Below are positions 52,913-58,749 of a stretch of DNA of 64,000 nucleotides, piece by piece (position 1 is the stretch's first letter; every line of letters begins with the position of its first letter). The translations under genes were made by a program, and so were the position numbers. Origin of the DNA: Oopsacas minuta (Eukaryota; Animalia; Porifera). The stretch covers positions 985,080 to 1,049,079 of the forward strand of contig JAKMXF010000332.1 of the NCBI GenBank assembly GCA_024704765.1, written 5' to 3'. The notes beneath the pieces are model-generated. The model saw only the letters and a list, made by a program, of their open reading frames with translations, had not been told where the DNA came from and ran no database searches.

Positions 52913-54480
52913 TTGGTGACATTTATTCTATGAAGAATTCATACTATGGATATGTTTACTGCGTGATTATTGTGTTAATATTTTGTATCATGTCCAGTGT
53001 TTTTCCGTAAACCGAGTTAATCGCTTCATTAACCACGTTTCTGTCATTTAATCATCCCCTACGCTCATCTAGACTTTAGAAGTTGGAGAGGATAAATTGA
53101 AATTAATTATTACAGTACCTACAGCAACAGGTACGGTGGATCTCGTTTCTACTAATTTATCGCTTAGACGAGCTTAAATTTTCACATAACTAGGTTCTTT
53201 CAGGCTACAGTGGATACCCAATTGGGATTAGTTGAGTTTATATGAACTCCGGAAATGGCGACCAAATTTTGACAATCCGTTAGTGTTTGTACTCTCTGTA
53301 TATGTCAATCGTTATAGTACACTAACCAACCATAGCTATTTGAAAACAGCTAAATTTTCTATTATTGTGAAAGGCAATAGGACATTCATTGGGCAATTCG
53401 TGCATTCCTTGGCGCTGAATGGATCCAACTAATGATCCAAATACAATCATTAATCCATCACATACACGGCCACAAACCAATCCATATTCAAATGGAATAC
53501 GGATATCAAAATGAAAATTATGTGTAATCTATGAAATCCATAAATTTAATGGATCTGATGGATTCTTTTGGATATTAAAGAATCCAAATCTCTCCAAAAT
53601 CCATGAATCTTGATAGAGTAAATTCAATTCCATTCAAATTGACTTAGTGGTCTCTTAGCTTCGAAATTTGCCGAATTGAGACACGCTGTACTAAAGTATA
53701 AATTTTTTACACTTTGCACTTTTTCTTTTCACGACTACATAATGTTATCGTCTGTGATTAATAATACATAGATGTAAAATGATTCACCTATCGTATTGTG
53801 TAGATTTCCTTAACTGGCCCAAATATTTATGCTTAAATTTCAAGAAATATTGTTTATTTGAATAGTAAATATAACCCACTTCTTATGGTAAATGCATGAG
53901 GAACGATATACTATTCATTGGAACTCAATTGATTGTCCAAACGACACATGAGGTAGTTTGAGATATCTAACCGCATATAACCGACTTCATAATGAGTAGA
54001 ATATCGTTTATCCCCCTATAAACCACTTATCTTCGAAATTTATCATAGTTCAATGAAGAGTCAATGAAGAGTCGATGAAGTTAGACGAATACCCATTCGG
54101 GAGTTAGAAGAAATGATAGTTATATCAAAAATCCACACTATACTCGATTATATCGGAAGATCAAAAACTGTCGAAGGTTCTACACAATAGGTCCAGAAAA
54201 TTTTCAATCATATCCAGAAAATTATTTGATCATTTTATCACATAATTATTAACACGTTCTAAATTGTTTATTTAAAACATAAATACTTAGTTGTATTTAC
54301 AGATTCTGATCTTATTATCGTATTCCACCCTCTACTATCGAATAGAATACAGTTGTGTTTAGTAACTTTTGTGATCGTATCGTAGCAGGTGATGAGTCTT
54401 GGTTTGATTATTATGAACCAGGGAGTGAATGTCAATCGAAACTATTGAAAATGCACGATGAACCGGTACCCATAAAGGTG

Positions 54481-54515
54481 CACAGTGGTTTGAAATGGGA
54501 GTTAGTAAAGAATAG
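54481..54515 (+). promoter_or_regulatory. 3' RSS-like end: CACAGTG + 19 nt + AAAGAATAG
   Basis: Read directly: heptamer 54481-54487, 9-mer 54507-54515. Confidence 0.75.
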
Positions 54516-54787
54516 GTATTCTAGTACTAGATAGCCATATGCAATGTATTATTTGCGAATAGGTTATCGTATCCGAGGAATCGTATGGGGTAATCAAATT
54601 TCTTCTATGGCTTCTAGATTTCTGGATATGACGTCATCACATATTATGATGACGTCACATTTAAAAAATTATTTAATAAAACTCATAGAAATTTCCACTT
54701 CATAAGAAAAATCTCCTACTCTGTATATATACTATTACCCTGTATAGTATTTGGATAAGAGTGTATAGATTTAACATTTTAATGAAT

Positions 54788-56983
54788 CTATGAATTAATT
54801 ATAAGTGAATCAACAATTTCGTCTATGGAAGAATCTAGTAATCTATTTTCGGTATTATCCCTACAACACTTTGCTCTTTTTGTGTGGCCGTGTTCCCCAC
54901 ACCTTTCACAAACTAAACTTGAACGAAATTGATTCAATACAGGGTCACTTTCAGAGGCCAGTCTCACGAAAATGTCCATTGCATTATCTTCAAATGAAGA
55001 CTTCCTTGCAAGATTCTCCCTATACTTTCTTAGTAACTTGTTGCATGCCTCGGATCCCTCTTCAGAGAAACTTTTCAGACCTCGCCCAAGGTTGAACTCT
55101 TTCAAAATTTCTTCTGAGTGAGCTAATACCCTGTGTAATGTTGGGGTAATGCTCACCCAAGGTAATGAATCAACGATCAAGAGATATGTATCGGTGCATA
55201 GATCACCAAAGACCTCGGTGTTAATGATCCTGTCTGAATTGATTATTCGAAGAATAGCTGACAAGTGTGTATGTAGTTTTGAAAGTGTTTCTTTGTGTTC
55301 TGTTTCAACAACTGACAATACACACTCAATGTATTTCGAATCACAGGAAAATGCTCGACGAGCTACACTACCAGTAGAGCTAGTACCTCCACTTGCATTC
55401 GGCTGATCTATCCTCATTCCTGTCTTCCCTTCAATCAGATTTCTGACAAATATCATTGAATTTTTTATCGTCAAAGATGTTGGTGACCATGTACGTTTTC
55501 CACAATTCAAATGATAAATTAGTAGATTGAACCACCTGAAAATGCCAGTGTACGAGTGTAACGGAGATGCTGGAAGGATGTTTATTGTTGAGGTTGGTTC
55601 GTGCGTTATGTTACAACGTTGGTTTGAAGGAAGTGAGAAGAACGAATGGCTGTCTTCTATTTCACCGAAAAGTTGAATTGCATCAGTAATGTACCTGTTG
55701 ATAGGAAATCCCTGTATTATCAACTCACGATCACTGAGTTCCTTATGTGTTGCTGTACATAATTGACAACTTGCCCCACCTGCCCCAGATAGAATTCCTG
55801 CCATTTTCCCATCAAGCATTGATCGAACAATGTCGACTCGTACTTGCTGATCAGGGCCAAGAGTAAATCCTTCACTTCTCATAAGATCAGTATCAGTATT
55901 GATTAGATCGTCCATAAATCGCTTGATATTAGCTTCGTTTTCTTTCGCAGCGAGGAGGAAAATCGGACGTTGAGCAAAAGGAGAATTGGGAGTGTTATTT
56001 TTCCAGAGTTCGCGACCGCTATTGCTTATTATCTTTACAGCTCTGAAACAGAATAAGATAAACGACTTAGTATCTGTATTCGTGTTTGATTGATTATATA
56101 CAGTGTGACTTCCAGAGCCATCTAATCCGTCTGCTATCTGGAATTGTAGGGGATAATCTTGAGCTGTAGGTGGCGGTAGCGTAGACATAAGCCTGCAAAA
56201 AGTATGGCGGACGTGATGGGCATATGGCATATATACACCAAGTGGAGTTTCAGGATTGGGGTACATCTGAATATCCGACCGTAAAATTATACTGTTTCTT
56301 TCTTCTACTACCCTATAGTATGCCGGGAAACGAATATCGCTAGATAGCAAGTGATGTCGGAGTTGTGTGTATTTCCTCCTGCCAATTTCTAGGAGATCTA
56401 CAAGGAACACTGTCTTGGTAACATCGAGCTCTTTCTTCAACAATTTACCGAATTGACCCGAAAACTTGTCATAGACTACAGATTTTGAAACTTTAGCTAT
56501 TTCTCGCTGTTTTGTTTGGTTCGATAGTAGTTGCAAGGCAAGTGCAGCTATCTTGATTTCTGAAGTATTCTCAACGATTGAGAGTGCTTTGATAGATTCC
56601 AAGACATTTGAGAGTCGTGAGCGTTGTTGTTGCATCGTGAGATTGTCAATACTCTTCCTATGGCTTGCAGAGAGTGTGGATATGACTTCTTCTTCATCTG
56701 AAGACAGCTCAACGGTATCATAAAAACGGTTCCTCTTCAACTCTGGTTCCATGGATATACCACAATGCCACCAGTCTCCCTCTAAGCAATCTAGCGATTT
56801 CTTTGCCTTCCTGATCCTGCTTCTTACTCGGAGGAGCGTTGCTTCCAATTGTTTCCTTTCTTCGAAGTCCATTTGAAAGTTCTGCTCAAAGAAACTGAGT
56901 GTCGTCGAGATACAGTTGTTGTTGTCTTTCAAAATCTTCGCAAATTCAAGATGAGAGTTAGGAAAAGTTAGTTCTTGAGTCAT
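54788..56983 (-). CDS. Transib/RAG1-core-like DDE transposase, 731 aa, intact
   Basis: NBD-like RKSIDNLTMQQQRSRL; DDBD-like IGRRKYTQL; catalytic-type IADGLDGSG, RSMLDGK and SEEGSEACNK; zinc ligands CQLC and HRVLAH; tail CERCGEHGHTKRAKCC. Confidence 0.93.
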   Translation of the reverse strand: MTQELTFPNSHLEFAKILKDNNNCISTTLSFFEQNFQMDFEERKQLEATLLRVRSRIRKAKKSLDCLEGDWWHCGISMEPELKRNRFYDTVELSSDEEEVISTLSASHRKSIDNLTMQQQRSRLSNVLESIKALSIVENTSEIKIAALALQLLSNQTKQREIAKVSKSVVYDKFSGQFGKLLKKELDVTKTVFLVDLLEIGRRKYTQLRHHLLSSDIRFPAYYRVVEERNSIILRSDIQMYPNPETPLGVYMPYAHHVRHTFCRLMSTLPPPTAQDYPLQFQIADGLDGSGSHTVYNQSNTNTDTKSFILFCFRAVKIISNSGRELWKNNTPNSPFAQRPIFLLAAKENEANIKRFMDDLINTDTDLMRSEGFTLGPDQQVRVDIVRSMLDGKMAGILSGAGGASCQLCTATHKELSDRELIIQGFPINRYITDAIQLFGEIEDSHSFFSLPSNQRCNITHEPTSTINILPASPLHSYTGIFRWFNLLIYHLNCGKRTWSPTSLTIKNSMIFVRNLIEGKTGMRIDQPNASGGTSSTGSVARRAFSCDSKYIECVLSVVETEHKETLSKLHTHLSAILRIINSDRIINTEVFGDLCTDTYLLIVDSLPWVSITPTLHRVLAHSEEILKEFNLGRGLKSFSEEGSEACNKLLRKYRENLARKSSFEDNAMDIFVRLASESDPVLNQFRSSLVCERCGEHGHTKRAKCCRDNTENRLLDSSIDEIVDSLIINS

Positions 56984-57048
56984 TGAAAAAAGCGTAGAAA
57001 ACGGTTGATTATCAGCAAATTCAATTTGTTAATGTCATATTAATCATG

Positions 57049-57058
57049 TATTTATATA
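57049..57058 (-). promoter_or_regulatory. Candidate TATA box of the Transib transposase gene
   Basis: TATATAAATA on the minus strand about 65 nt upstream of the ATG; weak evidence in AT-rich DNA. Confidence 0.3.
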
Positions 57059-57630
57059 TTAGATTTATTGGTAATTGGAATGCTGCAATCGAGTAGATAA
57101 ATTTAGCATATAAATTGCATAGCAACAAAAAGGTGACAATGGAATTCGCTGAAATTTTTCATGTTGCGCACTGTTTCGGGGCGTATCATTTTAATATGTC
57201 TTTCTAGATATTATAATGCCATTTTGGAATTAATTTCTAAGTGGTGTTTTGTGGTGTTTTTTTTGCGGCCATTTGGAAGTTCTTTTTTTAAAAATATTGT
57301 ACCTCTAAAGTACCATTAGTCAAATCAACTTTGAATCCAAATGTAGTAAAGATACACTGACGAAAATGGGAAATCAGATTTAGCATAACTGAATTGTGTT
57401 GAGGAAATAAAATAAATGAGATTCGGAGAATTCTGTGACGCTCTCAAGTAAACTTAAATTGGTGCTAATATTAACATCACTGAAACCGCAAATAGAACTA
57501 TTTTTGATTGATTCTTTAAATTCATATTGTGAGAGCTATATGTATTCGATCGAATTGAAATTTGAAATTAACATTATTCAAACAAACAAGAACGAGTTTA
57601 AACCATTAAAAATGAAATCTATTTTTTTGT

Positions 57631-57656
57631 CTATTCTTTGCATTCAAACCACTGTG
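57631..57656 (-). promoter_or_regulatory. 5' RSS-like end: CACAGTG + 10 nt + AAAGAATAG
   Basis: Reverse strand: heptamer 57656-57650, 9-mer 57639-57631. Confidence 0.75.
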
Positions 57657-58749
57657 AGGTGAAGGTCGCACTATCTGCTGGCAATAGAATGGCTATGGTA
57701 TTTTGGGATATGGAAGGAATTCTACTTCTTTATTGGTTACCAGAAATGACCACCATCAACAATGATTACTACATCGAAGAATTAATGGAATTCTTATTAA
57801 TCCTTTTAATCCGGAGATGCGAGACAAGTTGACACATGGAGTACAACTCCAACATTACTACGCAATGCCTCATATAAACTCCAAAGCAATGGATGCAATT
57901 CACCACTTGGGTTCCGAATGCCCCCCTCACCTCCCTTATAGTCCAGACCTGGGTCCCAGAGACTACTGGTTATTCGGAGAGATAAAGAGGCCGCTTCGTG
58001 GGAAGAGATTTGATGCTTTTTCAACGGCCAGACAAGAAAGTGAAACATCGATAATAGGTCCATCAAAAGAATTCTATTCCACTGGGATAGAAAATCTGCC
58101 AGGACGATGGATATGATATATAGAGTTAAAGGGATAATTTTCCAAGATTTGACAACGATTATTTATTGGTTTTGGTTTATTTAACTGAATGTCAATTATC
58201 AGTATTCTGTTCGAAGCGATTTCGACTTCGCTTTCAAGCTAGATGGCGTAGAGAATCACAATATCATATCAGTATTTTCGTTGTATTTCACTTGGTCCTA
58301 ACGCGAGTTCACTATTGAGAATGTTACTAAAAATTCTATCTATTCAGACTGGGATCAAACGATTCTAGTATTTGTTTAAATGGAAATCAGGGCTTAAATG
58401 GTTGATACGAAATTTCTAATTCATTATCTAACCACCGTCCAGGGATATTGTACATTTCAACAATATATTCAGGTGTCTAATAATTTTACCATACTTTGCT
58501 TTTATAATATTAGCTCATTGTTTATTTATTCCTTTGGCACATTCCAAATTCATGTTCTGCTCCCAGATGTACTACTGGATACTACAATGATCATAGTGGT
58601 GTTGCAGTGTTTCACATTCCTTCCGGGCCGCAAGATATCGTCCATAAGTGGAAACGATTTCTGCATACAGAAGTTAATTATTTCTTTAGAACTTGGATAT
58701 AAATCAAAATGATAATTCTACGGTTGAGGCTTAATTTTTCAGTAGGTAA

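Follow-up and report, generated by a model that had tools for sequence, protein, structure and literature searches.

The ends of Transib transposons consist of a heptamer, a spacer and a nonamer, and the 5′ and 3′ ends of Transib5, Transib2_AG and TransibN1-3_AG are similar to the recombination signal sequences (RSS) RSS12 and RSS23 (Kapitonov and Jurka 2005, PMC1131882), a likeness on which a hypothesis has been built (Yakovenko et al. 2021, PMC8355894). Subgroup I Transibs, with ctenophore, Hydra and bacterial members, all combine asymmetric ends with an alpha11-alpha12 region, a CTT1 tail and an equivalent of the nonamer-binding domain (NBD) (Tao et al. 2022, PMC9435367). The ends of AanRAGL, a RAG-like transposon from the pelagophyte Aureococcus anophagefferens, are built of a 13-bp element, a spacer of 4 or 13 bp and a 10-bp element (PMC9435367). 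Asymmetric ends, a CCGHC tail and an NBD with a GRPR/K motif have all been seen in Transibs, and elements with both DNA-binding modes are predicted to tend to lose one (Martin et al. 2023, PMC10462144). Here we describe a Transib from the hexactinellid sponge Oopsacas minuta, located in a 64,000-nt stretch of contig JAKMXF010000332.1 (positions 985,080 to 1,049,079, forward strand), hereafter the window. The sponge element is a Subgroup I-like Transib whose end asymmetry is real and conserved, but such asymmetry has already been published for Transib and RAG-like transposons. Sponges are not mentioned in the text or the two text supplements of the Subgroup I study (PMC9435367), and our literature search found no description of sponge Transibs.

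The element carries an open reading frame (ORF) for a RAG1-like transposase between two copies of the 14-bp inverted repeat CACAGTGGTTTGAA, each of which begins with the heptamer CACAGTG (Table 1). This 14-mer has two sites only in the window, inverted and with zero mismatch, and no further copy of the element lies within these 64 kb. Inside each repeat an identical 9-mer, which we call the inner box, is separated from the heptamer by 10 nt at one end and by 19 nt at the other. Because the ORF is on the minus strand, the 10-nt end lies upstream and the 19-nt end downstream of the gene, and we refer to them as the 5′ and 3′ ends. The original prediction, which was made from the letters of the window, had named these heptamers and 9-mers, a perfect duplication of 5 bp at the target site (TSD), an open frame of 731 codons and the absence of RAG2. 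All are present as described: the spacing is correct when read in the direction of the ORF, AGGTG stands on both sides, the frame runs without a stop, and it encodes a complete, intact DDE transposase with no RAG2-like ORF beside it. Away from the antisense of the transposase gene, the element contains just one ORF of at least 80 aa. The ORF listing holds neither a RAG2-like gene nor a convergent RAG1L-RAG2L pair, and a second gene is excluded because the non-coding bases number only 673 and 307. We hold this identity and architecture to be practically certain.

Table 1. Features of the Oopsacas minuta Transib in window coordinates, followed by its nine relatives with their identity to the window element
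Feature	Position	Strand	Basis and remarks
Whole Transib element, 3176 bp	54481-57656	gene on minus strand	ends read directly; contigs of three runs break at 54480/54481 and 57656/57657
Left TSD copy AGGTG, 5 bp	54476-54480	.	identical to 57657-57661
Right TSD copy AGGTG	57657-57661	.	identical to 54476-54480
ORF-3′ terminus, 14-bp inverted repeat CACAGTGGTTTGAA	54481-54494	+	heptamer CACAGTG at 54481-54487
19-nt spacer, ORF-3′ end	54488-54506	+	register table of 10 elements
Inner box AAAGAATAG, ORF-3′ end	54507-54515	+	19 nt after heptamer; family consensus RGGRAATAG
Conserved blocks of the 3′ end only	54529-54569	+	AGATAG 54529-54534; AATGTATTAT 54543-54552; ATAGGTTATCG 54559-54569
Transposase ORF, 731 aa plus stop	54788-56983	-	sequence and profile matches
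C-terminal zinc knuckle C692-C706, CCGHC / CTT1	54866-54910	-	C-x2-C-G-x-x-G-H-x5-C
Catalytic span	55061-56122	-	D288 56120-56122; D391 55811-55813; E641 55061-55063; E645 also invariant
NBD-like domain, residues ~105-183	56435-56671	-	profile alignment to RAG1 NBD; model on RAG1 385/391-459
Predicted N-terminal three-helix domain, residues ~9-60	56804-56959	-	model; followed by disordered linker 81-107
A-rich tract inside 5′ box, ACAAAAAAATAG in ORF orientation	57619-57630	-	end alignments
Inner box AAAGAATAG, ORF-5′ end	57631-57639	-	10 nt after heptamer
10-nt spacer, ORF-5′ end	57640-57649	-	register table of 10 elements
ORF-5′ terminus, 14-bp inverted repeat CACAGTGGTTTGAA	57643-57656	-	heptamer at 57650-57656
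Host, left half of decayed mariner-like transposase	54346-54480	+	frame continuity across insertion
Host, right half of mariner-like transposase	57662-57829	+	Pfam PF01359 Transposase_1, E 2e-10, profile positions 26-65
L001, assembly GCA_024704765.1, second copy in genome			98% nucleotide identity; duplication CTATG; interrupted by 2.7-kb nested element
L002			76% nucleotide, 73% protein identity; duplication TAAAG
L003			62% protein identity; duplication AACTA
L004			61% protein identity; 3′ heptamer mutated to CATAGTG; duplication unmatched
L005			52% protein identity; duplication CTTCG
L006			42% protein identity; duplication GTCAG
L007, Oopsacas			41% protein identity; duplication TAGAG
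L009, Oopsacas			42% protein identity; duplication unmatched
L010			40% protein identity; duplication AGGTT

The box and its placement were followed through nine relatives from Oopsacas minuta and other assemblies, which span 40-94% protein identity to the window element and whose ends were located by heptamer, inverted repeat, duplication or similarity. In an ungapped register, the 5′ heptamer is followed by 10 nt and the box in nine of the ten elements (9 nt in L005), and the 3′ heptamer by 19 nt and the box in all ten. The original prediction had proposed this comparison, and its outcome is conservation. The heptamer is kept in all relatives except one mutated copy (L004). The boxes are AAAGAATAG at both ends of the window element, L001 and L002, GGGAAATAG at both ends of L007 and TGGAAATAG at both ends of L009; the 5′/3′ pairs are AGGAAATAG / AGGGAATAG in L003, AGGGAGTTG / AGGGAGTAG in L006 and TGGCTTTAG / TGGTATTGG in L010. 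Across nine families, mean pairwise identity is 0.97 for heptamers, 0.58-0.68 for boxes and 0.44-0.51 for spacers (44% for the 5′ 10-nt spacer and 51% for the 3′ 19-nt spacer). When each 5′ box is slid along its own 3′ end, the best match falls at position 27 in eight of nine families, and boxes agree at 7.8 of 9 positions within an element versus 5.7 of 9 between elements. These figures indicate that the two boxes of one element co-evolve and that the register is conserved across divergent element lineages, down to about 40% protein identity. Between the window element and L002, both boxes and both heptamers are identical despite a synonymous divergence (dS) of 1.2. Because the register is kept while the spacers have drifted, and the boxes are identical at this dS, the box and its short/long placement are under selection. 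The box is probably a binding site for the transposase.

For a single copy this evidence would be only suggestive, because about 1% of random pairs of 46-nt subterminal segments share a 9-mer, as calculated for this window. Chance as the origin of the shared 9-mer is rejected by the ten elements, all of which keep the box in register. A related alternative sees the locus as a dead or domesticated copy; its 9-mer would be left over from an ancestral inverted repeat that was longer and acquired a 9-bp indel, and would be devoid of present function. The non-negligible chance of a 9-mer shared within one copy speaks for it, as does the existence of decayed copies (L004 and L009, with unmatched duplications, the former also with a mutated heptamer). 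Against this, box and register persist at 40% protein identity while the spacers have diverged, and the window element has a full-length ORF, a perfect inverted repeat and duplication, and many near-identical copies with distinct flanks. The ratio of nonsynonymous to synonymous substitution (dN/dS) between the window element and L002 is 0.12 at a dS near saturation, which indicates that the transposase gene is under strong purifying selection and also runs counter to a dead copy. We consider a dead or domesticated copy highly improbable.

The ends contain conserved sequence beyond heptamer and box, as MAFFT alignments of the outermost 100 nt of each end show. Most families have an A-rich run 2-4 bases inward of the 5′ box, roughly at heptamer +19 to +21, and the length of this run differs among genomic copies (deletions at 57622). 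The position of this tract resembles that of the A-rich Transib/RSS nonamer. Three blocks found at the 3′ end only are kept between lineages of 40% identity: AGATAG at about 49-54, AATGTATTAT at about 63-72 and ATAGGTTATCG at about 79-89. All three have an ATAG core in common with the inner box, and a reasonable guess is that they are accessory transposase sites. Past the box, identity in distant pairs amounts to 56% for the 3′ end and 42% for the 5′ end.

A search of solved structures with the single protein returned HzTransib from Helicoverpa zea (E 2e-21) and amphioxus BbRAG1L (8e-8), and the same protein matched only RAG1 in Pfam, below threshold. With a family profile of 20 relatives, the values are 1e-66 for HzTransib, 8e-32 for BbRAG1L and about 1e-23 for mouse RAG1. 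An AlphaFold model based on 40 relatives (mean pLDDT 88) superposes on HzTransib over residues 183-731 (Z 33.5, root-mean-square deviation 2.6, 467 residues), on NBD-containing RAG1 chains with residues 99/107-688 against 385/391-1004 (Z 30-31.5), and on BbRAG1L over residues 184-715 in the structural alignment, which was accompanied by a Foldseek ranking. D288, D391 and E641/E645 are invariant in both protein alignments (20 and 40 relatives) and match the motifs of HzTransib, RAG1L and RAG1. Profile and model alike identify the protein as a Transib/RAG1-like DDE transposase with a predicted RNase H fold and an invariant triad.

HzTransib is the best structural match (PDB 6pqn and others) and shares the DDE core and the 5-bp duplication. 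The sponge enzyme, however, keeps what HzTransib has lost, namely an NBD-like domain of the RAG1 type, the zinc-binding-region insert and the CCGHC tail. The alignment to RAG1 starts within the NBD, where the family segment reads sRkplseLtlkqqrsrL, whereas the alignment to HzTransib begins only at profile position 170, so HzTransib is without the NBD-like domain. Along profile positions 409-457 (~48 positions), RAG1 and BbRAG1L align throughout, whereas HzTransib contributes just 13 residues; the window protein keeps the region equivalent to alpha11-alpha12 of the zinc-binding domain in this profile alignment. Carmona et al. 2016 (PMC4840297) further show that in HzTransib most of the NBD is missing and that its ends have no clear nonamer. 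The tail motif of the sponge protein, C692-x2-C-G-E-H-G-H-x5-C706, resembles the tail of the Mnemiopsis element MleTransib_3931 in the supplement of PMC9435367. At the N terminus, the three-helix domain modelled alone reaches a pLDDT of 82 and is poorly conserved (29% column identity). Its search against the PDB gave no fold match with E below 4, and we considered that it might be a helix-turn-helix.

These features are those of Subgroup I Transibs: a single RAG1-like gene, a 5-bp duplication, asymmetric ends with a CAC heptamer, the zinc-binding-region insert, the CCGHC (CTT1) tail and an NBD-equivalent domain. The sponge element differs in its hexactinellid host, and the likeness is one of features, with a tree drawn within sponges only; some of its sponge sister lineages have lost the CCGHC knuckle and keep asymmetric ends. 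Vertebrate RAG1 with its 12/23 RSS shares the heptamer CACAGTG, a homologous core including the NBD, and the use of one short and one long signal. In contrast to RAG1, a domesticated recombinase, the sponge element is a mobile element without RAG2, without the RING / N-terminal non-core region and without the GRP motif; it has a CCGHC tail rather than an acidic one, spacers of 10/19 rather than 12/23 (+-1), and a box that is not ACAAAAACC. Insect Transibs with 12/23-like ends likewise lack RAG2, place the short spacer at the 5′ end and the long one at the 3′ end, and combine a heptamer with a second block, but their spacers are about 12/23 (offset 11) with an A-rich nonamer, whereas those of the sponge are 10/19 (offset 9) with a G-rich start of the box. 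In AanRAGL the first 7 bases are separated from the second block by 10 or 19 nt, as in the sponge, and the duplication is again 5 bp. AanRAGL differs in carrying a RAG2-like gene and in sequence (CACACCC... and CCTCAAYAYG, versus CACAGTG and RGGRAATAG in the sponge). The novelty implied by the original prediction was therefore overstated, since asymmetric Transib ends are described in PMC1131882 and PMC9435367 and the +10/+19 layout occurs in the pelagophyte RAG-like transposon.

The CCGHC knuckle is present in the window element, L002, L003, L005 and L006 and is missing in every frame of L007 (5000-5133), L009 (5030-5162) and L010 (4920-5055). These three tail-less elements have intact ORFs and keep their 10/19 boxes, and the duplications of L007 and L010 are perfect. 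Because they retain the boxes, the tail is not a universal reader, and the CCGHC tail was rejected as a general reader of the box. The ends of the two groups differ at positions 8-14, with GCACG.. or TGGCA.. in the tail-less lineages versus GYTTA.. in the knuckle-bearing ones. A maximum-likelihood tree within sponges places the knuckle-bearing proteins on one side of a branch (support 82/87; P0039 and P0047 were omitted as near-duplicates of P0036), and the correlation between positions 8-14 and tail loss may reflect a single phylogenetic event.

It seems rather doubtful that the +10/+19 layout, with its 9-bp offset, represents the ancestral ends of the whole RAG/Transib lineage, common to the sponge Transibs and the pelagophyte RAG-like transposon. 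If it did, an NBD-like dimer would have enforced short/long pairing before the capture of RAG2, and tail-bearing and tail-less sponge lineages would form a natural experiment that sets NBD and inner box against tail and heptamer-adjacent bases. The differing bases 8-14 in the tail-less lineages fit such an experiment on two DNA-binding modes.

Our preferred reading, which we judge very likely, is that of an autonomous cut-and-paste Transib, Subgroup I-like by shared features, whose ends, we infer, are paired through the 10/19 boxes. The transposase would act as a dimer in which each catalytic core holds one heptamer, with nicking and hairpinning at the heptamer as in HzTransib and RAG. A dimeric NBD-like module would bind both inner boxes and, being off-centre, would require one box to sit about 9 bp further out. 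A productive synapse would then pair a left end with a right end, in an analogue of the 12/23 restriction that is independent of RAG2, and integration would create the 5-bp duplication. That the NBD-like domain reads the box and that asymmetric pairing is enforced is a tentative proposal, to which we give slightly less than an even chance. The pairing rule itself, in the sense of a functional need for one short and one long end, we purely infer.

The box could instead be read by the N-terminal domain (9-60), by the CCGHC tail or by a host factor, for instance an HMG-box protein, and the asymmetry could serve accessory functions (a 5′ promoter; 3′ termination or additional binding sites) with no pairing rule. 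This would suit an NBD-like domain that lacks the GRP motif, an extra N-terminal helical domain that is confidently folded in the model, conserved blocks over about 90 bp that only the 3′ end has, with an A-run at the 5′ end, and the dominance of the tail rather than the NBD in end binding by BbRAGL (PMC10462144, citing Zhang 2019). Yet the tail is truly absent in three elements that keep 10/19 boxes, the N-terminal domain gave no significant match to a DNA-binding fold and has low column identity, and the co-variation of the boxes at both ends agrees better with a single reader encoded by the element than with a host factor. Another reader without a pairing rule is in our view unlikely.

Several observations weigh against box-mediated pairing by the NBD-like domain in an autonomous Transib. 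The minor-groove motif GRP is replaced by S-H-R-K in this domain, and the box consensus RGGRAATAG is G-rich at its start, not A/T-rich like the RSS nonamer; the likeness to an RSS nonamer implied by the original prediction does not hold on either count. The offset between short and long ends is 9 bp, less than a full helical turn. The short/long placement that the original prediction had proposed is fixed in the lineage, in ten elements, but the difference between the two spacers is somewhat smaller than the one turn that it had named. Its description of the ends as bipartite is incomplete, as a simple bipartite model leaves the 5′ A-run and the three extra 3′ blocks unexplained. Part of the 12/23 restriction has been attributed to RAG2 (Carmona et al. 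2016, PMC4840297), which the sponge element lacks. Finally, the window holds no empty-site copy of the mariner-like host and no empty allele was seen; the pre-insertion state is represented only by the reconstructed mariner frame and the Pfam match of the right flank.

The origin of the 12/23 restriction of V(D)J recombination is a standing question: it may stem from the NBD dimer of the RAG1 ancestor or may require RAG2. HzTransib, the only Transib studied both biochemically and structurally, cannot answer it because it has no NBD and no clear second signal. The sponge family is compact, apparently young and RAG2-less, and combines an NBD-like domain and sharp short/long signals with tail-less sister lineages. 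It is thereby a natural substrate well suited to cleavage, synapsis and cryo-EM work and establishes no new principle. The current picture, in which Transibs ancestrally had asymmetric ends, a CCGHC tail and an NBD equivalent (PMC9435367, PMC10462144), is unchanged.

A word-indexed protein search found 67 relatives, of which the named ones are nearly all from Oopsacas minuta; one named relative, from Mnemiopsis leidyi, has 30% identity and is the nearest named match outside sponges. An exhaustive search of 1.84 billion cluster representatives returned 2517 proteins at E <=0.001, 201 of them at <=1e-30, so the superfamily is large. The Mnemiopsis relative (L008) showed no convincing ends or duplication, so the 10/19 geometry is not extended to ctenophores, and two metagenome relatives (L011 and L012, 30-32%) were left out because neither has a contig long enough to span the two ends. 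Perfect 5-bp duplications flank eight of the ten elements. In L004 (2288-5549) and L009 (2384-5381) both ends are present and the flanking pentamers are unmatched; these may be older or rearranged copies.

To follow the family in sequencing data, Logan contigs from three runs of one sample were mapped onto the element. Several contigs per run break exactly at the two termini and continue into mutually unlike flanks, and the element therefore belongs to a many-copy family. At least 99% identity is reached by 364 of 605, 282 of 465 and 1411 of 2255 contigs in the three runs. Over the element, summed word depth exceeds that of the unique right flank by factors of tens to thousands, a ratio that does not translate into a copy number. 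With numerous copies at least 99% alike, the family looks young, and the element, which is intact, is probably still mobile. One 779-bp contig in a run of a second organism matches the transposase gene (window 55114-55892) at about 94% identity and could come from a close relative of the host or from horizontal spread.

The element is a nested insertion into a mariner-like element, with exact boundaries. The left flank ends in ...DESWFDYYEPGSECQSKLLKMHDEPVPIKV, the right flank resumes in frame with KVALSAGNRMAMVFWDMEGI... after one TSD copy, and removal of the element together with one copy of the duplication restores the mariner reading frame. The insertion into this old mariner-like element is recent. 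The host element (54181-54480 and 57657-57961) contains many stops, and contig depth is raised over the left flank, as expected of a repeat.

The second genomic copy, L001, is itself interrupted by an insertion at L001:5741-8461, whose 489-aa ORF has no Pfam match. The inverted ends of this 2.7-kb nested element, CACTGCTCAAC, measure 11 bp, and its 3-bp duplication, TAA, recalls PIF/Harbinger.

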